64,000 nucleotides of DNA, taken from the IMG/VR virus record IMGVR_UViG_3300022868_000009, positions 62,001 through 126,000 of that record; one strand, 5' to 3'. The notes beneath the pieces were generated by a model. That model was not told the origin of the DNA. It did no database searches and saw nothing but the letters and a program-made list of their open reading frames with translations. Within the stretch, counting starts at the first letter, position 1, and every line of letters begins with the position of its first letter. This document shows, piece by piece, positions 17,052-62,400 of this stretch. The translations under genes and the position numbers were made by a program.

Positions 17052-17722
17052 TTATAATTTTTAAAAAATCAGGATTTATATGATTATAAGAATAGAAACC
17101 ATCTGATCTAGGATCTTCATATAACTCCAAATTATTTATATTAATTTCATAAATAATATATTTATTAGATTCATCATTTAACTTATCATTTAATCTATTT
17201 TTAGATAAAATATTTTGAGCATCATTAATATCAATAGAAAAATACAATCGACCTGGTCCAATCACCTTTTTCGAAAAAAGAAGGACACAAACCTTTCTTT
17301 TTAATTTTTCCAACATTTTCAATATTTGTAACATGGTACAACTTATTTGGTGTATATTGTAATTTCTTATCAAACCTAGATTCAAAAAACAATTTAATTT
17401 TATCATTTTTATTAGATTCTACTTCATAAGACTTAAAATCCTTCCAAGGAAAGATTCTAGATATATTTTCGCGTTCCAATTCAAAATAACTCAAATAAAA
17501 CCCCAAAACATTATATACGTGGAATAAATATTCCAAATCATTTTCAGTCAATAAAACATCATATGATAATATAAAAGTATTGTTATTATAATCAAATTCA
17601 ACAATACACCAATAATTTAGTTTACTAGATTCTCTTTCTATGATATTTTTACATTTTGATAATTCGTGAGTTTTTATCAATCCTTCATTAATCATCAACA
17701 CACAATCCTTATACTTTAACAT
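17038..17722 (-). pseudogene. Paralogue of 15410-16135 (HxT ART/Tpt1-like), split by a frameshift at a T6 run
   Basis: LYHVT...KKGLCPS in ORF 17231-17722; GPGRLYFS...LYEDPRS in overlapping ORF 17038-17406; junction at 17274-17279. Confidence 0.65.
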
Positions 17723-17813
17723 TTTTTGTCGATTATTTTAAAAATACTTTTTCTTTTTTATATATAATAAAAAATCAACATCCAGTTTGGAAAATCTATT
17801 TAATGAAAATGAT

Positions 17814-50119: not shown

Positions 50120-51050
50120 GTAAAATATAGTCTGTGCTTGGGCAGACGTTCATCTTCGGATGGAGCAGATAAAACATCGTAAGGTGTCGAAAGAGAGGAA
50201 GGTCACTTATTCTCGCCAATAGTCTTCGGATTATGGTCAATCTAAGCAAGTCTCATTTTTGTCTTGACCAACAAGACAGCCTCAATAGAAAGGGGATAAG
50301 ATGAAACAACGTGAGTAACGATCTTTGGTAAGAATAAGATGGCTCAATTGCCCGCAAGGGGAACAAAAGTTATCAAATATAGAATGGGGACATTCCAATA
50401 TCGTTTAATCCACTCATTAAGTGTTCGTTGATAGATAAGAGATAGAATAGTAGTTCGAATGTGGAAAGTTAGAGCATTATTCAGTTTCAAAGGTGTTGAA
50501 AGATGTCTTAACAAACGGCACAGTAAGTCCTCCGGGCTGAAACGCATACGAAGGGTCGTATTTTGTAAGGTGAAACTTATGAATCGGTGGACAGGCACTT
50601 TGTGGTGATATCATTTTTTATTAGCTCACAATGGTAGAGCAGTAGTATTCTAACTAAAGGTAGATGGTTCAATTCCATCATAAAAAAAGCAAAGTCCCTG
50701 TCCGTCTGTTAAGTAAAGGTGCTTAAAACTTTACACTTCGGTGAATAAAGTGGATTCAAAGCTCGCAAGGTAGAGAATCTTTGATACAGTAGCCTCAACT
50801 TTTAACCCTAGCAGGTTATTAACGCCACGATAGTGGTGAGTGTACGCAAAATATCGAGTAACTTAATAGTACTAGTGATGTAACCACATAAAAAGTTACA
50901 GTACAGCTGGTGTACATAGTTGCCTTTCGAGGGATTATGTGGACAATTCAGGAACGAAGAATAGCAACTCTTTGATAATCTGAAGAAAGCAAAACATATA
51001 ATAAACTGTGTGTTTTACCAGTATGACAGTTTTTAGTCTCAAAATTGTTT
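50120..51050 (+). ncRNA. Large ornate ncRNA, GOLLD-like (boundaries approximate)
   Basis: No credible ORF; GC-richer than flanks; UUCG/GCAA hairpins at 50151-50162, 50219-50234, 50351-50360, 50734-50743, 50923-50932; embedded tRNA-like element; terminal stem with AGUCUC loop at 51026-51048; next to tRNA genes. Confidence 0.6.
50615..50687 (+). pseudogene. tRNA-like element inside the large ncRNA (all-AU acceptor stem, 6-nt anticodon loop)
   Basis: TTTTTAT/ATAAAAA acceptor, GCTC/GAGC D-stem, GATGG-TTCAATT-CCATC T-arm. Confidence 0.75.
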
Positions 51051-51450
51051 CTCTATCAAGATAAAAACCTTGACGTGGTGATAGAGCTTTAAACTAATAT
51101 TTATCAAATGTGAAAAAAGTAGTAGAAATTAAAAGACGCAACACGCAGCCCGTTCTCTGCGCTACTTCACAAAAATGTGAACGATAAAAATCTTCACATT
51201 TAAATACACCAAGAATAACACCATCACTGTAGCCCTAAAGGAGTGATGTTGTCGCATAAAAACGATTAGTGTTAGTGTGTGTTTGAGAAGACGACGGGGG
51301 ATTTCACAAAAGTAACATGAATCAAGTAGTGTGAAATAAGAAATTCCTCCAAGTTTTCTCGGAAAATTTTTTTATGCAAGAAATAATTTGTATATTGTCA
51401 AAAATAGAGAATAAATATTTAATATATAAAAAATAGTAAAAACAGAAACA

Positions 51451-51537
51451 ATGAATAATACTTTTAAACATAATAGTTCATCTTTTCATAAGTGGTTTAG
51501 CCGCTTCGGATCGGGAATGTTATGCCTTAAAAGTTAA
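51451..51537 (+). CDS. Putative attenuator leader peptide 1 (MNNTFKHNSSSFHKWFSRFGSGMLCLKS)
   Basis: 28-codon ORF ~30 nt after TAATATATA motif; overlaps antiterminator strand; F/H/W codons match downstream tRNAs. Confidence 0.7.
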   Translation: MNNTFKHNSSSFHKWFSRFGSGMLCLKS

Positions 51538-51566
51538 GATTAAAAAATATTAATCAACAAAGGGAC

Positions 51567-51604
51567 AAACTCGATTCTAACAAGATTCGGGTTTTTTGTT
51601 TTTT
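51567..51604 (+). terminator. Intrinsic terminator upstream of tRNA-His/Trp/Phe (attenuator)
   Basis: AAACTCGATTCT-AACA-AGATTCGGGTTT then T-tract. Confidence 0.8.
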
Positions 51605-51626
51605 ATAAACGTTCTTAAAAATATAT

Positions 51627-51702
51627 GGTGGTTATAGTGTTAGTGGTAGCACGGCAGGTTGTGGTTCTGTTAGGATGGATTCAAATTCCATTAATCACCC
51701 CA
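51627..51702 (+). tRNA. tRNA-His(GTG), encoded G-1 and CCA
   Basis: Cloverleaf; GCAGG-TTGTGGT-TCTGT anticodon arm. Confidence 0.92.
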
Positions 51703-51712
51703 AATTTAACAC

Positions 51713-51783
51713 AGGTCTATAGTGTAACGGTAGCATAAGTGATTCCAAACCACTTGGTCCGGGTTCAAATCCTGGTAGGCCTG
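51713..51783 (+). tRNA. tRNA-Trp(CCA)
   Basis: AGGTCTA/TAGGCCT acceptor; TTCCAAA loop; CCGGG-TTCAAAT-CCTGG. Confidence 0.92.
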
Positions 51784-51852
51784 CGAGAAGTTTAAATATG
51801 GTTAAATGAAGGATGGTTAAAAGGTAGAAAAATGAAATATTAATACAAATTT

Positions 51853-51925
51853 GGAACCGTGGTGTAGGTGGTCTGCACGATACTCTGAAGAAGTATAGGT
51901 ACCCGTTCAACTCGGGTCGGTTCCA
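51853..51925 (+). tRNA. tRNA-Phe(GAA)
   Basis: GGAACCG/CGGTTCC acceptor; ATACT-CTGAAGA-AGTAT. Confidence 0.9.
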
Positions 51926-52002
51926 CTTTAAACTTTTAAATTTTAATATATATTAATGTGAAGAAAGAACCAGTTTTAATGAAAAATAATAAAAATTAAC
52001 AA

Positions 52003-52749
52003 ATGAAAAAATATACACAATTTAGTAAATCTTTAGAAAAAATCAATCAAAATATGGAATTATTTGAAAAAGCTATCGATCAAAATCAAAAAGAAAAAAT
52101 AGATAGATATATTAATGCAAACAATTACAAAAAAGTTCTATCAGAACTAAAACAAATTATTTTTAATTTAAAAAAAGAAATTAAAAATTCCAATTTTGAT
52201 GATTTCATTTATAAACAGAACAATAAAGATATAGAAATAATATATAATCCGACTATTCGTGGTATTTTAACCTATTTAGATGGTAAAAGAGTAGAATTTG
52301 AATATGGAAAAGAAGAGAATCAACAAAAAATCTTAAACACTATCTATATTGATGGTGAAAGAGACCCATTTTTAGATATAACTATTCAACCACCATTTAA
52401 TCAGATACATATTAATAATGGTTTGCCAGTTTTTATGAAAGGTCTAGGATTAGGTAAAAAAGTTTACAAAAAACTAATTAAAGATTTTGGTTATCTTTCT
52501 TCTTTTAAAGGAATAAAACCTTCTATTGAAAGTGATTTGGTTTGGGATACTTTAGCTGATGATAGAGAATTGTTCACTTTTGTGAATGATAACAATATCA
52601 TTTGTTTTTGGAATGAAGTAGATTATGATATTATAATTATTAAATTGAAAGAATTTTACAAAATAAAAGGACAAAAAATCTTTGATAACGATTTTAAAAA
52701 GTTATATAACTTAACTGATGAAAAAATAGAACAAATAATTAATATATAA
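52003..52749 (+). CDS. Hypothetical protein, possible GNAT-like motif
   Basis: MKGLGLGKKVY resembles acetyl-CoA-binding motif A. Confidence 0.5.
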   Translation: MKKYTQFSKSLEKINQNMELFEKAIDQNQKEKIDRYINANNYKKVLSELKQIIFNLKKEIKNSNFDDFIYKQNNKDIEIIYNPTIRGILTYLDGKRVEFEYGKEENQQKILNTIYIDGERDPFLDITIQPPFNQIHINNGLPVFMKGLGLGKKVYKKLIKDFGYLSSFKGIKPSIESDLVWDTLADDRELFTFVNDNNIICFWNEVDYDIIIIKLKEFYKIKGQKIFDNDFKKLYNLTDEKIEQIINI

Positions 52750-52767
52750 AGAAAATCAATTTTAAAC

Positions 52768-53016
52768 ATGAAAATTAAAAGATATAATGAATCATTAATT
52801 GATAATGATAATAACACTAGAGAAGATTTCAATGAAGAAATTGATGATCTAATATCAGAATTAAAGATAAGATATAATAATTTTAATAATTTAATTGATT
52901 CATACAAAATAATAGAAAAAAGTAAAACAGAAGAATGGGAAAAAGTTAGAAATGAACTAAGAGGCGCATTTGATGGTTTTAAAAATGAATTAATACAAAA
53001 AATTAAAAAATTTTAA
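52768..53016 (+). CDS. Hypothetical protein (MKIKRYNES tag)
   Basis: ORF after TAATATATA motif. Confidence 0.55.
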   Translation: MKIKRYNESLIDNDNNTREDFNEEIDDLISELKIRYNNFNNLIDSYKIIEKSKTEEWEKVRNELRGAFDGFKNELIQKIKKF

Positions 53017-53019
53017 ATA

Positions 53020-53094
53020 ATGATTATAATTAACATAAATAGTAAATCGAAAAAGAATAGTCGTCTGAAAACGGCTCGGAATTGTATTACCTAA
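53020..53094 (+). CDS. Putative attenuator leader peptide 2 (MIIININSKSKKNSRLKTARNCIT)
   Basis: 24-codon ORF; AGT AAA TCG AAA AAG AAT AGT cluster matches downstream Lys/Ser tRNAs; contains 1:2 hairpin and antiterminator strand. Confidence 0.7.
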   Translation: MIIININSKSKKNSRLKTARNCIT

Positions 53095-53116
53095 ATTTTT
53101 AGGTACAAAGAATTAC

Positions 53117-53146
53117 AAACCGAGTCTGAAAAGATTCGGTTTTTTT
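53117..53146 (+). terminator. Intrinsic terminator 2 nt before tRNA-Lys (attenuator)
   Basis: AAACCGAGTCT-GAAA-AGATTCGGTTT plus T-tract. Confidence 0.85.
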
Positions 53147-53148
53147 AT

Positions 53149-53226
53149 TGGCCATTAGCTCAGTAGGTTTAGAGCATCTGCCTTTTAAGCAGAGAGTCCA
53201 GGGTTCGATCCCCTGATGGCCAACCA
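53149..53226 (+). tRNA. tRNA-Lys(TTT) with encoded CCA
   Basis: TGGCCAT/ATGGCCA; TCTGC-CTTTTAA-GCAGA; CAGGG-TTCGATC-CCCTG. Confidence 0.95.
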
Positions 53227-53228
53227 AT

Positions 53229-53301
53229 GGATCTGTAGCTCAGTTGGTAGAGCTTCTGCCTTTTAAGCAGAAAGTCCAGGGTTCGAGTCCGACTAGGTCC
53301 A
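53229..53301 (+). tRNA. tRNA-Lys(TTT), second copy with mispaired T-stem
   Basis: GGATCTG/TAGGTCC; same anticodon arm; T-stem CAGGG/CCGAC pairs only 2 bp. Confidence 0.7.
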
Positions 53302-53305
53302 CTAA

Positions 53306-53420
53306 GGCTTATAACAAATAGGTTGTATTTATAGAGCATTTGTCGGGTTACCGCATGTCACTAAAATGTATATTTTAAGAGTTACTAGAGATATATGAGG
53401 TTCGAATCCTTAATAAGCCA
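53306..53420 (+). ncRNA. tRNA-like RNA (acceptor stem and T-arm intact, enlarged non-canonical centre)
   Basis: GGCTTAT/ATAAGCC-A; TGAGG-TTCGAAT-CCTTA; 115 nt. Confidence 0.65.
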
Positions 53421-53424
53421 CTAT

Positions 53425-53508
53425 GGAAAGCGTCCGGTTGGACGAGGGGCTACTCTTGAAAAGTAGTAATGGGTTACACCATTAGGGGTTCGAATCCCTT
53501 GCTTTCCG
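53425..53508 (+). tRNA. tRNA-Ser(TGA)
   Basis: CTACT-CTTGAAA-AGTAG; long variable arm; G discriminator. Confidence 0.93.
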
Positions 53509-53512
53509 CTAT

Positions 53513-53600
53513 GGAAGAGTACCCAAGTTGGTGAAGGGGCTGGTTTGCTAAACCAGTAGGTCTGAAATACGGCGCGTGGGTTCGAGCCCCACTTCTTCCG
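53513..53600 (+). tRNA. tRNA-Ser(GCT)
   Basis: CTGGT-TTGCTAA-ACCAG; long variable arm; G discriminator. Confidence 0.93.
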
Positions 53601-53648
53601 CAATTAGGTTTGAAACTCAGTTGGTGACCTACTAAGAAAGATATTTCA

Positions 53649-54535: not shown

Positions 54536-55021
54536 TCACTGTTTTTTCCACCATAGAGTTTGCCAATCAGGATAAACAAAACCTTCTGAATCTGGTTTGA
54601 TTTGCGTATAACTTTCATATCCTTCCATTAAATCTATCGACTCTTTATATTCTTCTCTTTCCGAATTATCCAACATCAAATAACCACCCTTCTTTAATTT
54701 AGGAAGAGCTTCCTTTACACAGTTAACCCTATCTCTTCCATCTACTAAAATAAAGTCGAAATGTTCATCTGGGAAAATAGAAACATATACACTATAATCC
54801 CTGTTATGTTGATGAAGGGTAACATTTCCGGGAAGGGATTCAGATACTTTTTTAATCCATTCACTGTCATGTTCTATACTAATCAAATGACTCACTCGAT
54901 CAGCTAACCATTTAGTAGAAGCACCTGCACCAAACTCCAAGCAATGCATATCCTTTGTCAAATAAGACTCAAGGAACTCAATTTCACCTTCGGTTATCCA
55001 AATTATTTTTCTATCAATCAT
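54536..55021 (-). CDS. Class I SAM-dependent methyltransferase
   Basis: LEFGAGAST, SIEHD, FDFILVDGRDR, GGYLMLDNS. Confidence 0.85.
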   Translation of the reverse strand: MIDRKIIWITEGEIEFLESYLTKDMHCLEFGAGASTKWLADRVSHLISIEHDSEWIKKVSESLPGNVTLHQHNRDYSVYVSIFPDEHFDFILVDGRDRVNCVKEALPKLKKGGYLMLDNSEREEYKESIDLMEGYESYTQIKPDSEGFVYPDWQTLWWKKQ

Positions 55022-55086
55022 AATTTTTATCTATATATATTAAAGAAATTATTTTATTTTCTTAAAAATTTTTGTATATTATAACA

Positions 55087-55317
55087 AATTAATCTAATCG
55101 ACTATACGCTGATTTTATAAAAAATTAGAGGAAAGTCGGGACAATTTTGCTTAAGGCAGGAGACTTTGGTCGTTCGTACTGCCGAGGTTGCAACTCAAAC
55201 AGATCTAGGAGGTGAGCAATTCTATAATGATCGGGTTAGAGGCACTCTTCGGAGAAGTGTAAACACTTAGATAAATGTATAGATAAAACAAAATCCCGCT
55301 TATGGACTAGGTTAATT
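55087..55317 (+). ncRNA. rnpB: Minimal RNase P RNA (~230 nt)
   Basis: GAGGAAAGTCGGGAC...AACAAAATCCCGCTTAT P4 signature; P1 55087-55099/55305-55317; P2 CTATAC/GTATAG; P3 hairpin. Confidence 0.85.
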
Positions 55318-55340
55318 TTAACTTTTAAATTATTTAAATT

Positions 55341-55625
55341 ATGCAAGATAAATGTAAAATATGTGGTCGTAATGAAACAACATCATTTCATCATTTAATA
55401 CCAGTAACATTACATACTAAAAAGTGGTTCAAAAAAAATTACGAAAAAGACTATATGAAATCACACGGTATAGACTTATGCAAACAATGTCATAAGGCTA
55501 TACATAAATTTTGGGATGAAAAAACTTTGGGCAAAAAATTTAATACATTAAAAAGTTTATTAGAAAATCAAAAAATTAAAAAACACATTGAATGGGTTAT
55601 AAAACTAAAACATAATAAAAAATGA
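55341..55625 (+). CDS. Small HNH-like protein
   Basis: CKICGR...FHHLIP...LCKQCHKAIH. Confidence 0.7.
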   Translation: MQDKCKICGRNETTSFHHLIPVTLHTKKWFKKNYEKDYMKSHGIDLCKQCHKAIHKFWDEKTLGKKFNTLKSLLENQKIKKHIEWVIKLKHNKK

Positions 55626-55903
55626 CAAAAGACAAAACTAAAGACGAATCTAAAAACGAATCTAAAGAAAAAGAAGAAAATTTATACTCAATTATTGTAT
55701 ATAATGACGAAGTTAATACATTTGAACATGTTATTGGTTGTCTTATTAAATACTGTAAACATGAATTAACACAAGCAGAACAATGTACCATGATTATACA
55801 CAATAATGGTAAATGTGATGTTAAAAAAGGCACATTTAAAGAATTAGAAACTCCTTATTATGCTTTACTTGATTCTGGGTTATCTGCTGAAATTGAAAAT
55901 TAA
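55622..55903 (+). CDS. clpS: ClpS N-degron adaptor (Bacteroidota type)
   Basis: IIVYNDEVNTFEHVI..L...C.H...QAEQC..IIH.NGKCDVK.G. Confidence 0.88.
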   Translation: MTKDKTKDESKNESKEKEENLYSIIVYNDEVNTFEHVIGCLIKYCKHELTQAEQCTMIIHNNGKCDVKKGTFKELETPYYALLDSGLSAEIEN

Positions 55904-55985
55904 ATATATGTCTAATAACATATCCTAATTTTTGACTTATTAGAAAATTTCTCGTATATTATTATAAATACTAAAACTTCAAATC

Positions 55986-57293
55986 ATGAGAAATATACAA
56001 AAATTATCAGAAAAAGAATTAATAGTACATTTAAAATCTATCTATAATAAACAGATAGATATTTATGATAAATTTGAAAAAACAGGTGAAATTGAACCAA
56101 TTATTACCGATTTTGATGATCAAGATGCATATAAATATTTTATGCAATATGCAATCTTTAAAACTCACCCAAACGCAATAGTAAAATTTAAATTTTTTAA
56201 CCGTGGAAAACATAAATTTCCAGTCGGTTCAGATTATCATATTAAAAAACAAATAGAATCTATGAAAAATCTTAGATTCACTCCTGAAATAGAAAGATCA
56301 TTTAGAAAAAAATTTTCAAATATGAAAGGTGAATCTTATTTTGATGAATCTTTTTATGGTTTTTTAAGAAGTTATAGATACGATCCATCTGAAGTTAAAG
56401 TAACTCAAACAGGAGAAGATATCGAAATAGAAATAACTGGTTCTTGGTTAAAAACAATTTATTGGGAAACACAAATAATGCCGATTTTAACAGAAACTTG
56501 GTATATGTTAACTGATCAATATAAAAATATTCATAATTTTGATCATCTATATGATACACACAGAGACAAATATCGAAGTTTTATAACAGCCGAATCTAAT
56601 ATTGCAGAATTTGGTTTAAGAAGAAGATATTCAAAACTAATACAAGAATTTATCAATATACATTTTATGTGGGAATCACCAGCTAGATATATTGGTACGT
56701 CTAATTGTATGTTCGCTAGAAAATTTAATGTTAAAGCCATTGGAACACAAGCTCATGAATGGATAATGTTTCATGCCGCAAAATATGGACCAGAACTAGC
56801 AAATAAGATATCTTTAGAAAATTGGGTTAAAGTTTACAGAGGAGAATTAGGTATTGCGTTATCTGATACTTATGGTACAGACAATTTCTTAAAATCATTT
56901 GATACTTTACATAGTAAATTATTTGATGGTGTTAGATGGGATTCTGGTGATTTTAAATTATTTACTGATAAAATAATTGGACACTATAAATCATATGGAA
57001 TTAATCCTAAATCCAAAACAATTGTCTATTCTGATGGTATAAATTCATTTTTAAAAATACGAGATATTATAAGATATGCAAGTGATAAAATTAAATGCAC
57101 GTTAGGAATTGGTACTTATTTAACAAATGATATTGGTGTACCAACTATGAATATTGTTATTAAAATGACAGAAGCTAAACCTGAAAAAATGGATTGGAGA
57201 TATTGTATAAAGACATCTGATTCATCTGGTAAATATACTTATACTGACAAAAAAACATTAAACAGATACTTAGAAGATTTGAATATAAATTAA
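55986..57293 (+). CDS. pncB: Nicotinate phosphoribosyltransferase
   Basis: DAYKYFMQ, EFGLRRR, GTSN, GTQAHEW, ALSDTYG, GVRWDSGD, YSDG, GIGTYLTND, NIVIKM. Confidence 0.92.
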   Translation: MRNIQKLSEKELIVHLKSIYNKQIDIYDKFEKTGEIEPIITDFDDQDAYKYFMQYAIFKTHPNAIVKFKFFNRGKHKFPVGSDYHIKKQIESMKNLRFTPEIERSFRKKFSNMKGESYFDESFYGFLRSYRYDPSEVKVTQTGEDIEIEITGSWLKTIYWETQIMPILTETWYMLTDQYKNIHNFDHLYDTHRDKYRSFITAESNIAEFGLRRRYSKLIQEFINIHFMWESPARYIGTSNCMFARKFNVKAIGTQAHEWIMFHAAKYGPELANKISLENWVKVYRGELGIALSDTYGTDNFLKSFDTLHSKLFDGVRWDSGDFKLFTDKIIGHYKSYGINPKSKTIVYSDGINSFLKIRDIIRYASDKIKCTLGIGTYLTNDIGVPTMNIVIKMTEAKPEKMDWRYCIKTSDSSGKYTYTDKKTLNRYLEDLNIN

Positions 57294-57338
57294 ACTAGAT
57301 AAGAATATAATAATAAAAATAAAAAATAATATAATATT

Positions 57339-57584
57339 ATGGTAAAAAAACAATACATGGGTAAAACAGTGAAAGAACATTTCGGTTATAAAATAAAACA
57401 CATGATTCAATTCAGAATGTCAAGAGGACCCAAAGGAAAAGAAATATCTCATCAAGAACCTAGCGGATATTTTGGTGTATATGCAGGCAAAAATCTATTG
57501 TGTGGAAATAAAGAATTCAAAAAAGTAAAAGATGCAGAACAATTTTTATTCAATTATATTAAAAATAAGAAATATGAAATTTAA
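57339..57584 (+). CDS. Hypothetical protein
   Basis: 81 aa basic ORF in operon. Confidence 0.55.
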   Translation: MVKKQYMGKTVKEHFGYKIKHMIQFRMSRGPKGKEISHQEPSGYFGVYAGKNLLCGNKEFKKVKDAEQFLFNYIKNKKYEI

Positions 57585-58131
57585 CAACAGACCAAATAAA
57601 TCAATAAAAAATGATGGTACAACACATTGGATTTCAAGAAGTTGTGCTGTTGTTTCCTATGTATCAGCAAAAATCGGGAGTGATTTTTATATTTTAGTAG
57701 GACAAAGAGGACAAGGCACACCAGACTGTAAAGGTTTGTGGAATTTACCTTGTGGTTATCTAGATTGGAATGAAAGTGGTAGAGAAGCTTTCTTTAGAGA
57801 AATGTGGGAAGAAACTGGTATAAATTGCGAAAAACTTCTAAAAAATTACAAAATTTTTATAAATACAGAAGAACCTTGGTATATTGATACTAATCCAGAC
57901 TCACATCTTCAAAATATTTCATTACATTATTCAATTGTATTTGATGCAACTAATTCTATATTACCAGAATTCAGTACAGAAAATAGTGAACCTGATGAAG
58001 TTGAAAATTTAATGTGGATTAAGATTAAAGACGCTCATAAACTGCATTTTGGTTTTGATCATAAAAAAAGGGTAAAAGTCTTCAACGAAAAATTTATAAT
58101 ACCATTAGAAAATTCTCTTAAAATATCTTAA
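57574..58131 (+). CDS. Nudix hydrolase (ADP-ribose pyrophosphatase-like)
   Basis: WNLPCGYLDWNESGREAFFREMWEETG Nudix box; FGFDH. Confidence 0.88.
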   Translation: MKFNNRPNKSIKNDGTTHWISRSCAVVSYVSAKIGSDFYILVGQRGQGTPDCKGLWNLPCGYLDWNESGREAFFREMWEETGINCEKLLKNYKIFINTEEPWYIDTNPDSHLQNISLHYSIVFDATNSILPEFSTENSEPDEVENLMWIKIKDAHKLHFGFDHKKRVKVFNEKFIIPLENSLKIS

Positions 58132-58219
58132 TAATTGACATATGTTATATAACATACCAAAAAATATTACAATTATAAAAATTTTTCGTATATTTAATTA
58201 AACAATAAAAAATATAATT

Positions 58220-59083
58220 ATGAAAAATATAATAAATTACGACAAAGTACTTGAAAATTCAAGATTTTTACTAAAAGAAAAAATTACAAGAACTAAACTT
58301 AAATCATTAGTATTGGGTATTAGTGGTGGAGTTGATTCAGCAATTGTTGCAGCAATTGCTAAACCTATATGTGATGAATTAAATATTCCTTTAATAGGAA
58401 GATATATTCATATAGAAAGTAATAAGAAAGAAGAAAAAGAAAGAGCTGAAGATATTGGAAAAGCGTTTTGCACTGATTTCCAATCAATTGATCTTACAGA
58501 ATACTTTGATACATTAAAAAATCTAGATGAAATGGATAATGAAGGTTCTCCTTATTCTGAATATGATTATCAATCAAAATTAATTAGACTTGGTAATATA
58601 AAAGCTAGAACAAGAATGATTTATCTTTATAATTTAGCTTCAAAAAATGGTGGTTTAGTATTAGGTACAGACAATTTAACTGAATATTATTTGGGATTTT
58701 GGACTTTGCACGGTGATGTTGGTGATTTTGGTTTAATTCAAAATCTTTGGAAGTCTGAAGTACATGAATTAACATTACATTTAGCTAAAAGTTTAAATGA
58801 AAAAGGTAAAGTGTTAGTTGATTGTGCAATGGCAAATGCTACTGATGGTCTTGGAATAAGTGAGACTGATCTAGAACAAATTATGCCAGATTGGAAAGAA
58901 AGACATAATACAACTGCAAGTGGTTATTCAGAAATTGATAAAAAATTACAATCTTATTTAAAAGATATTAGTAAAGGAGAAAACATTTCAAAATATAATA
59001 ATGATCCAGTAATTGAAAGACATAGATCATCTTTCTTCAAAAGAATAAACCCAGAAAGTATAGATAGAGAAGAATTAATTTAA
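58220..59083 (+). CDS. nadE: NH3-dependent NAD+ synthetase
   Basis: LGISGGVDSA, GNIKARTRM, GTDNLTE..LGFWTLHGD, KSEV, TDGL. Confidence 0.92.
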   Translation: MKNIINYDKVLENSRFLLKEKITRTKLKSLVLGISGGVDSAIVAAIAKPICDELNIPLIGRYIHIESNKKEEKERAEDIGKAFCTDFQSIDLTEYFDTLKNLDEMDNEGSPYSEYDYQSKLIRLGNIKARTRMIYLYNLASKNGGLVLGTDNLTEYYLGFWTLHGDVGDFGLIQNLWKSEVHELTLHLAKSLNEKGKVLVDCAMANATDGLGISETDLEQIMPDWKERHNTTASGYSEIDKKLQSYLKDISKGENISKYNNDPVIERHRSSFFKRINPESIDREELI

Positions 59084-61847: not shown

Positions 61848-62400
61848 GACATCCTTGTCCTCTTAAATGAGCATCAGGTCTTTGTAAAAATACTCCATGA
61901 TTAGGACATTTTATTTTTACTTTTGTTTTATTATTAAAATATTTAACTTCACTATAATTATACTTATTATTATGAATTTTATTTGATCTTATTATAAATT
62001 CTTCCGTAGTTAATTTATATCTACCACCACATTTAGAACAACCATGTCCACTTAGATGATTTGAAGGTGTTTGCCAAAATTCACCATGTTTAAGACATAT
62101 TATTCTCACTTTAGTTTTACTATTTACATAATTAACAAAACTATAATCATATTTATCATCATGAACTATATTTGATTTATTAATAAATGATTCTGTATCA
62201 TCTTTCATATTATTAGTTGCACAAACAGGACAACCTTGTCCTTCTAAATGTTTAGAAGGACTTTGCCAAAATTCACCATGTTCAAAACATATTATTCTCA
62301 CTTTAGTTTTACTATTTACATAATTAACAAAACTATAATCATATTTATCATCATGAACTATATTTGATTTATTAATAAATTCAATTAATTTAATTTTCAT
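61834..62400 (-). CDS. DUF723-like zinc-binding repeat protein (endonuclease-associated DNA-binding repeats, no nuclease domain)
   Basis: Three FIxxSNxxH..KYxYS...C..HG.F.Q...HL.G.GCxxC repeats; first two near-identical in DNA. Confidence 0.7.
   Translation of the reverse strand: MKIKLIEFINKSNIVHDDKYDYSFVNYVNSKTKVRIICFEHGEFWQSPSKHLEGQGCPVCATNNMKDDTESFINKSNIVHDDKYDYSFVNYVNSKTKVRIICLKHGEFWQTPSNHLSGHGCSKCGGRYKLTTEEFIIRSNKIHNNKYNYSEVKYFNNKTKVKIKCPNHGVFLQRPDAHLRGQGCPKCC

Follow-up and report, generated by a model that had tools for sequence, protein, structure and literature searches.

A phage-encoded RNase P RNA without most of its specificity domain, linked to tRNA genes

Phages encode an RNase P RNA from which most of the specificity domain (S-domain) has gone and whose genes are linked to tRNA genes, as shown by a covariance-model match, covariation throughout a family of relatives, and the virus origin of the record. 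The RNA described here lies in a stretch of 64,000 nucleotides (positions 62,001 to 126,000 of IMG/VR record IMGVR_UViG_3300022868_000009), referred to as the window, in whose coordinates all positions are given. It is very likely a true RNase P RNA homolog with a reduced architecture. We favor as likely the reading that it is a working minimal ribozyme that matures phage tRNAs with the RnpA protein of the host; expression, catalysis, use of host RnpA, and benefit to the phage are all inferred, as there are no measurements of activity and no RNA-seq run is listed for this phage.

Only two ribozymes are universal, and RNase P RNA is one of them. Few structural classes of it occur in nature: A and B in bacteria; A, M, and T in archaea; and the nuclear and organellar forms. 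In the literature searched, which included a broad survey of RNase P genes, we found no report of an RNase P RNA encoded by a phage or other virus, although most subscription journals were not covered and a prior description is possible. The same literature, with the same gap in coverage, did not describe any bacterial-type RNase P RNA that lacks the S-domain in nature.

A reduced class A RNA in a virus record

The initial annotation, made from sequence alone, proposed a phage RNase P RNA of about 230 nt, reduced mainly in its S-domain, with recognizable P1, P2, P3, and P4, and 1.5 kb from tRNA genes. All of these claims held. A permissive Rfam scan of positions 54950-55450 (501 nt) returned a match to RF00010 (RNaseP_bact_a) at 55090-55318 on the plus strand, with 59.1 bits and an E-value of 1.3e-17, covering model positions 1-367 end to end. 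Scored against the whole virus record, the same match has an E-value of 2.2e-18 and is the sole copy. Within the RNase P clan, RF00010 gave this RNA its highest Rfam score, in an output from which lower-scoring overlapping clan members are dropped. Our own structural model places the gene at 55090-55314 on the plus strand, 225 nt in length, so that the size is 225-229 nt overall.

The default Rfam scan of the whole window, run at gathering thresholds, reported only seven tRNAs and no RNase P match. The check by Infernal against Rfam models that had been suggested is therefore positive in permissive mode only, at 59 bits versus a gathering score of 100 bits. The score falls short because a single hairpin of a few dozen nucleotides takes the place of about 140 S-domain model positions (P8-P14). 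What the scan recovers is a clear homolog of class A RNase P RNA that nevertheless lies under the curated threshold of that family and is without one of its two domains.

The virus record is 344,634 bp long, about 25% GC, and 48% complete according to CheckV. The sequencing runs that contain its DNA are salt-lake and marine metagenomes, and the Bacteroidota host named in the initial annotation is an assumption. The gene occupies a 319-nt gap. On one side is a methyltransferase gene on the minus strand (54536-55021), on the other a small open reading frame on the plus strand (55341-55625). It begins 1,488 nt downstream of a cluster of eight tRNA genes that closes with a tRNA-Ser ending at 53601. 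Because of that distance, and because opposite-strand reading frames intervene, this copy needs a promoter of its own; a search around it for a sigma-70-like promoter or an intrinsic terminator gave no signal above shuffled sequences. Minimum free energy z-scores for the region were unremarkable (-1.9 for the plus strand, -1.4 for the minus strand); single-sequence folding misses the pseudoknotted structure and does not discriminate between strands. Reading through TAG does not extend open reading frames in the window, which gives no sign of TAG recoding.

A family with a conserved catalytic domain and one hairpin for an S-domain

A blastn search of GenBank phages with the window RNA gave a match of 72% identity in LR756501, an uncultured phage of 735 kb. 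That copy carries many paired substitutions relative to the window and has an intrinsic terminator about 25 nt downstream. Searches with three other members found no cultured phage in the same database. Relatives were collected by scanning IMG/VR with degenerate patterns and screening the matches with a covariance model, R1, built from the window sequence alone. At least 60 full-length members were found on viral contigs, scoring 66-160 bits with R1 and ranging from 184 to 338 nt (median 220) and from 35 to 60% GC. Eighteen of the 60 are on contigs longer than 200 kb, up to the 735-kb record. Against RF00010, the larger relatives reach 47-66 bits. The 642-kb phage LR756502 has one copy, and in four phage genomes there is one copy per genome. 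The RNA is unannotated in these GenBank records; the gap persists even in complete phage genomes of 735 kb and 642 kb because the RNA scores under the Rfam threshold, and a dedicated covariance model would find such genes routinely.

A family-specific pattern run over 185,579 species genomes matched 78 places, of which ten are family members, all on contigs of metagenome-assembled genomes (MAGs); none of the isolate genomes in that collection has a member by this pattern. One of the ten, on a MAG contig labelled Paceibacterota (L427), resembles the member on viral contig L242 in that both contigs are 362,763 bp long and both RNAs score 85.1 bits with R1. About 40 matches in Nostoc and Stigonema were rejected as not belonging to the family. 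Among other patterns tried on viral contigs, ACTTAGATAAATGTA and AGAGGAANNTCNNGACAA gave nearly all chance matches, and 4 of 7 matches to GAGGTTGCAANNCAAACAG were by chance. A few weak signals are on record as well. LR756500 has a 26-bit match to R1 that is without Rfam support and stays unconfirmed; weak matches in L233, L243, and L255 were left unresolved; and L374 carries a more distant RF00010-like RNA of 57 bits.

Helices were assigned by hand, and each pair was verified by script in the window sequence; apart from one A.C in P1, every proposed pair is standard. The elements are listed in Table 1.

Table 1. Elements of the window RNA and the nearby tRNA genes, in window coordinates; counts refer to family members.
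Feature	Position	Strand	Description
Phage tRNA genes	50614-53601	+	8 genes, including a CUA-anticodon tRNA; presumed substrates, same strand as the RNA
P1	55090-55099 / 55305-55314	+	One A.C; double-sided changes in all 10 pairs across the family
P2	55102-55107 / 55277-55282	+	6 bp; 98% paired, 6/6 pairs compensatory
P3 hairpin	55109-55128	+	CUGAUUUU-AUAA-AAAAUUAG; pairs verified, family covariation
J3/4 and P4 5' strand	55129-55141	+	AGGA, then AAG-U-CGGGA; P4 is 55133-55141 / 55294-55301, bulged U at 55136
P5	55142-55145 / 55187-55190	+	CAAU / GUUG; 57-59/59 paired, compensatory changes
P6 pseudoknot	55147-55153 / 55213-55219	+	UUGCUUA / UGAGCAA; 7 bp; 56-58/58 paired; absent from the model
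S-domain remnant	55155-55183	+	P7 stem GGCAG/CUGCC, internal loop GA / GUUCGUA, inner 3-bp stem, UUUG loop; stems covary
J5/15	55191-55193	+	CAA; 57-59/59 conserved; aligned to GCAA of RF00010
P15	55194-55196 / 55239-55241	+	CUC / GAG; covaries
J15/16	within 55194-55241	+	AAACA, between P15 and P16
P16	55202-55205 / 55229-55232	+	GAUC / GAUC; covaries; its loop carries the P6 3' strand
L15	55233-55238	+	GGGUUA; GGU in 60/60 members
Two small hairpins at the P18 position (P18, P19)	55245-55268	+	CUC-UUCG-GAG and AAGUG-UAAA-CACUU; covary where present
J18/2	55269-55276	+	AGAUAAAU; 50-58/59 conserved; aligned to AGAugAAUG of RF00010
J2/4	55283-55293	+	AUAAAACAAAA; family consensus ..AACAGAA, followed by P4 3' strand UCCCGCUU to 55301

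The features expected of a class A catalytic domain (C-domain) are present. P4, with its bulged U, follows a conserved A-rich J3/4 (GAGGAAAGUC-type); the AGGAA before P4 (A40 G41 G42 A43 A44 in alignment numbering) is conserved in 58-59 of 59 sequences, the bulged U47 in all 59, and the A after P4 likewise in all 59. J18/2 (AGAUGAAUG-type) and J2/4 (ACAGAA-type) are both recognizable, the latter with A198, A199, C200, A201, G/A202, A203, and A204 kept in 51-59 of 59 sequences and aligned to ACAGAAcCCgGCUUA of RF00010. J5/15 contains what we take to be the A248 region in E. coli numbering. The P15/P16 internal loop with its GGU, the site for the tRNA 3'-CCA in class A RNAs, is in place, although there are no CCA-binding data. 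Also present is a P6 that joins the sequence following P5 to the P16/P17 loop, which distinguishes type A from type B. Sixteen of 59 members have hairpins at the P18 position and 43 have none; P8, the usual dock of the P18 loop, is absent.

Three details of the helices in the initial annotation need correction. The TTGCTTA/TGAGCAA helix is real and covaries, but the label "P7-like" failed: with its 5' strand just after P5 and its 3' strand inside the P16 loop, it is the P6 pseudoknot. A hairpin of the form GAG..GCAA.CTC also failed, its middle pair forming in only 13 of 59 sequences; its bases belong instead to P5 and P15, helices that form in 57-59 of 59 sequences and show compensatory changes. 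The remaining hairpin, GGCAG...CTGCC, is present and corresponds to P7. An "extended P5" that would compete with P6 was suggested by two sequences and is refuted by the family, in which its first pair forms in 26 of 59.

Covariation was counted on 59 distinct sequences in Infernal alignments, which were used because MAFFT was unreliable for diverged members in P2/P3 and L15. Standard pairs fill 96.4% of pair cells versus 60.0% in column shuffles, none of 500 of which reached 96.4%, and controls in which partners were slid by 1-3 columns were 34-47% paired. Double-sided changes occur in 48 of 51 pairs. Because the alignment was fitted to the nested structure by a model without P4 and P6, these two helices are the fairer test of covariation. 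P4, although absent from the search model, is paired in 56-59 of 59 sequences, and a single position may show as many as four types of pair. The outer two pairs of P6 covary (CG 32, UA 25, UG 1; and UA 33, AU 13, CG 10), while its inner five are constant.

Three search patterns fixed parts of P4-P6, the hairpin GGAG, and GGUGAGC, and the conservation of GCUUAA, GGAG, and GGUGAGC is therefore partly ascertainment. That of J18/2, J2/4, and most of L15 is not, because the patterns that yielded members left them unconstrained. The family is under purifying selection both on structure and on the catalytic and substrate-binding nucleotides.

The class A S-domain, P8-P14, which recognizes the tRNA elbow, is absent from the window RNA. 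In the Rfam alignment about 140 model positions are reduced to about 41 nt, and all that remains of the domain is one 29-nt hairpin. Every member has a 5-bp P7 stem, an asymmetric internal loop, a covarying inner stem, and a variable tip of 2-138 nt that is the main insertion site of the family; the boundaries of the deletion are identical throughout. The internal loop has GA on its 5' side and seven nucleotides on its 3' side (consensus GUUUGCA, the last A in 58 of 59), and its conserved nucleotides G71, A72, G83, and A89 are kept in 51-58 of 59 sequences. The identification of the GGCAG/CUGCC-type stem as P7 comes from L275, the largest member at 338 nt, in which the Rfam model aligns it so. 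The insertion in L275 aligns, with good posterior probability, to the conserved P10/P11-J11/12 stretch of class A, which is kept in no other member, so that members appear to represent different stages by which a type A ancestor lost its S-domain. T-arm-like inserts are seen at the tip in L225 (GUUCGAAUC) and L333 (GGUUCAAAUCC); ARAGORN did not call either of them a tRNA.

Genomic context and probable function

Genes for tRNA are the only consistent neighbors of the RNA. They occur within 3 kb at 41 of 60 loci, and all 355 such tRNAs are oriented with the RNA. At 24 loci of the 60 a co-oriented tRNA gene lies within 100 nt, commonly 0-15 nt away and on either side. No tRNA was found within 3 kb, in the DNA fetched, at the other 19. 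No protein family recurs near the RNA, the maximum being 5 of 59 loci. RnpA (PF00825) was not detected in any of six genomes: the window's own contig (CheckV 48%), three that are at least 98% complete (98-100%), one at 70%, and the 735-kb GenBank record. An enzyme of the PolyA_pol/CCA-adding type (PF01743) was found in four of five genomes tested, the window's own included.

Our preferred reading is that the RNA would catalyze removal of the 5' leaders of pre-tRNAs encoded by the phage itself, and that host RnpA would be its cofactor. In this type-A-derived RNA of a huge phage, the full C-domain has been kept (P1-P5, the P6 pseudoknot, P15/P16 with its GGU for the tRNA 3'-CCA, J18/2, and J2/4), and one conserved hairpin, P7 with a short extension, stands in place of the S-domain. 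With no S-domain to touch the T-loop/D-loop elbow, the enzyme would have to bind its substrate through the acceptor stem, the contact between CCA and GGU, and that between protein and leader. In many relatives the RNA would be transcribed inside a tRNA array, which would bring enzyme and substrate close together, and the cuts of tRNA processing would define the ends of the RNA.

Work on E. coli offers a precedent. The C-domain alone cleaves substrates about 100-fold more slowly than the full-length RNA, with or without the C5 protein (PMC5839562). Its activity depends on a P6-type ("P6-mimic") pairing, disruption of which lowers activity and compensatory restoration of which rescues it (PMC5839562), and P18 is dispensable once the S-domain is gone (PMC5839562). 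The pattern of selection in the phage family, in which P6 is kept at 7 bp, P18 is mostly lost, and the core and GGU are invariant, is what these deletion experiments predict, and we therefore judge an active minimal RNase P that uses host RnpA to be the likeliest explanation. Points in its favor are the bulged U (59 of 59), the J5/15 CAA (57-59 of 59), the L15 GGU (60 of 60), and a P6 that is always kept. A mere binder of RnpA is disfavored, since RnpA binding alone needs neither the GGU nor the bulged U. The host and its RnpA are unidentified, and the partnership with host RnpA is itself an inference. One small tension is unresolved. Only 89 of 528 neighboring tRNA genes (17%) encode their CCA. 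For the invariant GGU to have a role, then, the CCA must be added ahead of 5' cleavage, and a phage CCA-adding enzyme at work by that stage would remove the difficulty.

Of three options offered by the initial annotation, a minimal ribozyme using host RnpA fits best, because the catalytic and substrate-contact nucleotides are conserved and the six genomes have no detected RnpA. The other two are unlikely but not excluded. In one, the RNA is a decoy or sponge with little or no catalysis, which titrates host RnpA through the protein-binding face of the C-domain (P2/P3, J18/2, J2/4) and so depresses host tRNA maturation or redirects the protein. In support, any protein partner must be the host's, no phage RnpA gene having been found; engineered RNAs are at least about 100-fold less active once the S-domain is lost (PMC5839562); and the regions that contact RnpA are conserved, these being what we take to be the RnpA contacts of solved bacterial holoenzymes. 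Against it, nucleotides for chemistry and substrate docking that protein binding would not need, including the J5/15 CAA and P6 along with the bulged U and GGU, are invariant, and the RNA lies inside arrays of the phage's own tRNA genes and shares their direction. Crippling RNase P would hurt the phage, whose tRNAs themselves need the enzyme. The other option is an altered or broadened range of substrates (phage mRNA, operon junctions, tRNA-like structures, or host RNAs), or an unrecognized phage protein as partner in place of RnpA. The S-domain measures the tRNA elbow, and it is gone; 19 of 60 loci have no nearby tRNA; and the literature on archaeal type T RNAs likewise leaves the missing specificity component open (PMC3579882). 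The conserved P7 internal loop, whose role is unexplained, could bind protein or RNA, and on that account an altered range or a phage cofactor remains open. Weighing against it are the absence of any protein family co-located at more than 5 of 59 loci, the standing of tRNA genes as the strongest contextual signal, and the invariant CCA-binding GGU, which points to tRNA-type 3' ends.

That rnpB was captured from a host and that the RNA is what is left of it, decaying and without function, is all but ruled out. The large deletion relative to cellular RNase P RNAs and the score under the Rfam gathering threshold would suit such a remnant. However, 60 diverged copies, over a wide range of GC content, keep every helix by compensatory changes and retain the catalytic nucleotides; there is one copy per genome; and the deletion has the same boundaries family-wide. 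Covariation of this kind is the signature of purifying selection on structure, and decay is excluded on that ground.

Returning to the minimal ribozyme, a bolder version is possible but less likely. Large phages may carry a portable kit for tRNA maturation, made up of a tRNA array, a CCA-adding enzyme, and a mini RNase P RNA. Transcribed within the array, the RNA would act on neighboring pre-tRNAs, perhaps in cis, where local concentration would be high, and could therefore do without an S-domain to recognize the elbow. By capturing host RnpA it might both secure the phage's tRNA supply, in the face of host shut-off or anti-tRNA defense, and divert the protein subunit of the host enzyme. If this is true, it would be the first case of an RNase P encoded by a virus, and RNase P ribozymes would gain a new structural class in nature.

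Relation to known RNase P RNAs

The closest relative is bacterial class A RNA (RF00010; for example, E. coli M1 RNA), with which the phage RNA shares P1-P5, the P6 pseudoknot, the P15/P16 loop with GGU, J3/4-P4 with the bulged U, J5/15, and the J18/2 and J2/4 consensus. It differs in being without P8-P14, so that P7 and a short conserved extension remain and the RNA has 225 nt versus a 367-position model; the S-domain conserved regions missing from it are, we take it, CR-II and CR-III. P18 is optional in the phage family, and the RNA is encoded by a phage rather than a cell. With this family, the translation-related equipment of huge phages extends to a probable RNA enzyme.

Among archaea, type T is a natural cellular form of RNase P RNA from which most of the S-domain is missing (PMC3579882). 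Like the phage RNA, type T RNAs keep the catalytic domain and the universal P4, J2/4, and J15/2 positions, and they too are missed by the standard Rfam model of their group. Type T nevertheless has an archaeal-type C-domain with a 3-bp P2, a shortened P15, no L18, and Pop5, Rpp30, and Rpp29 proteins (PMC3579882), whereas the phage RNA is bacterial type A-like, with a 6-bp P2, a 7-bp P6, and GGU in L15. Type T RNAs are also GC-rich and serve as the sole RNase P RNA of the cell, while the phage RNA would coexist with the full-size enzyme of its host. Given the 6-bp P2, and bacterial class A as its best family in the clan, we conclude that the phage RNA is not type T and that the likeness is convergent. 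Reduction has gone in another direction in fungal mitochondria, where Rpm1-type RNAs are bacterial-type RNase P RNAs cut to about P1, P4, and adjacent conserved regions. In these organellar RNAs much of the C-domain is gone too (P15/P16 and P6), and they depend on dedicated large proteins, unlike the phage RNA with its intact bacterial C-domain.

The engineered Eco CP RPR (PMC5839562), made by deletion in the laboratory, has essentially the same architecture as the phage RNAs, with P6 needed and loss of P18 tolerated. The phage RNAs differ from it in being natural, in their longer P6 (7 bp), and in a P7 hairpin that is conserved and contains a specific internal loop. The family is thus a natural experiment on the minimal bacterial ribozyme, one that agrees with the deletion studies in its retention of P6 and the dispensability of P18, and its members of 184-230 nt make up a small, diverse set for structural and mechanistic work alongside the laboratory construct.

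Distribution of the mini RNase P RNA family

The sole family members found in 185,579 species genomes are ten loci (L427, L409, L438, L406, L396, L430, L411, L419, L402 and L391), all on MAG contigs whose bacterial labels are diverse (Paceibacterota, Planctomycetia, Opitutaceae, Gemmataceae and others). Because the MAG contig of L427 and the viral contig of L242 agree both in length (362,763 bp) and in score to R1, the covariance model built from the window's RNA alone (85.1 bits), these members appear to be phage DNA binned into MAGs. About 40 Nostoc and Stigonema loci (among L382-L459) match a 32-nt family pattern, and the matching Nostoc sequence is conserved across many Nostoc genomes; lacking any R1 match, these were rejected as RNase P-like RNAs.

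Weak R1 matches of 25 to 32 bits, which may represent more distant relatives or intermediates, occur at L464 (in LR756500; no Rfam support found), L233, L243, L255 and L374. The last is an RNA of about 300 nt resembling RF00010, the Rfam bacterial class A model (57 bits). At L243, a distance of 460 nt separates the two family patterns, which suggests a sizeable insertion or a more complete S-domain.

Inserts and transcription signals

Inserts of 60-90 nt occupy the tip of the P7 hairpin, the S-domain remnant, in L225 and L333. Both hold textbook-like T-arm sequences, and that of L225 additionally holds an anticodon-arm-like stem. Recombination with the surrounding tRNA arrays might have introduced them as tRNA fragments; alternatively, they might be a built-in T-loop module. 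ARAGORN called no tRNA in either insert. In L227 the insertion lies in P3, the hairpin near the 5' end, and contains a tandem repeat.

A strong intrinsic terminator lies about 25 nt downstream of the RNA in L001, from the 735-kb phage LR756501, and from this sequence evidence alone we infer that the RNA there forms a discrete plus-strand transcription unit. The window copy has no terminator like that of L001.

Features in the window and at family loci
Feature	Location	Strand	Detail
tRNA, CUA anticodon	window 50614-50688	+	ARAGORN call tRNA-Pyl
Methyltransferase gene, upstream of RNA	window 54536-55021	opposite	
Gene cluster downstream of RNA	window 55622-59083	+	ClpS (PF02617), nicotinate phosphoribosyltransferase, NUDIX hydrolase, NAD synthase
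PolyA_pol/CCA-adding enzyme domain ORF, 447 aa	G000:C1:240321-240722 (window's virus record, outside window)	-	106.7 bits
RNA with P7-tip insert	L225 798-1046	-	T-arm-like AAAG-UUCGAAU-CUUU
RNA with P7-tip insert	L333 2309-2605	-	T-arm-like CAGG-UUCAAAU-CCUG
RNA with P3 insertion	L227 2192-2410	+	GGGUACUU-type unit in tandem
Intrinsic terminator, strong	L001 3205-3250		GGGGUAUUGA-GAAA-UCAGUACCCC and U-tract
tmRNA gene	L275 1678-1957	+	134.7 bits
tmRNA-like match, weak	L333 2217-2300	-	28.9 bits
Weak R1 match (L464)	LR756500 81675-81896	-	

Neighbouring RNA and protein genes

A single tRNA array at L275 holds both a tmRNA gene and the mini RNase P RNA, and the weak tmRNA-like match in L333 lies immediately downstream of the RNA. 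The window's CUA tRNA has an acceptor stem composed almost entirely of A/U. Such an anticodon would read TAG. Read-through of TAG raised long-ORF codons in the window from 17,124 to 17,766, similar to TGA read-through, without lengthening ORFs, and only four of 59 long ORFs terminate at TAG; there is therefore no evidence for TAG recoding within the window. The tRNA may matter elsewhere in the genome. A CUA tRNA also adjoins the mini RNase P RNA in L227.

Genes similar to the PolyA_pol/CCA-adding ORF occur in three of the four other huge phages tested. The genes downstream of the window copy constitute an NAD-salvage cluster, and clusters of this kind have been reported for jumbo phages.
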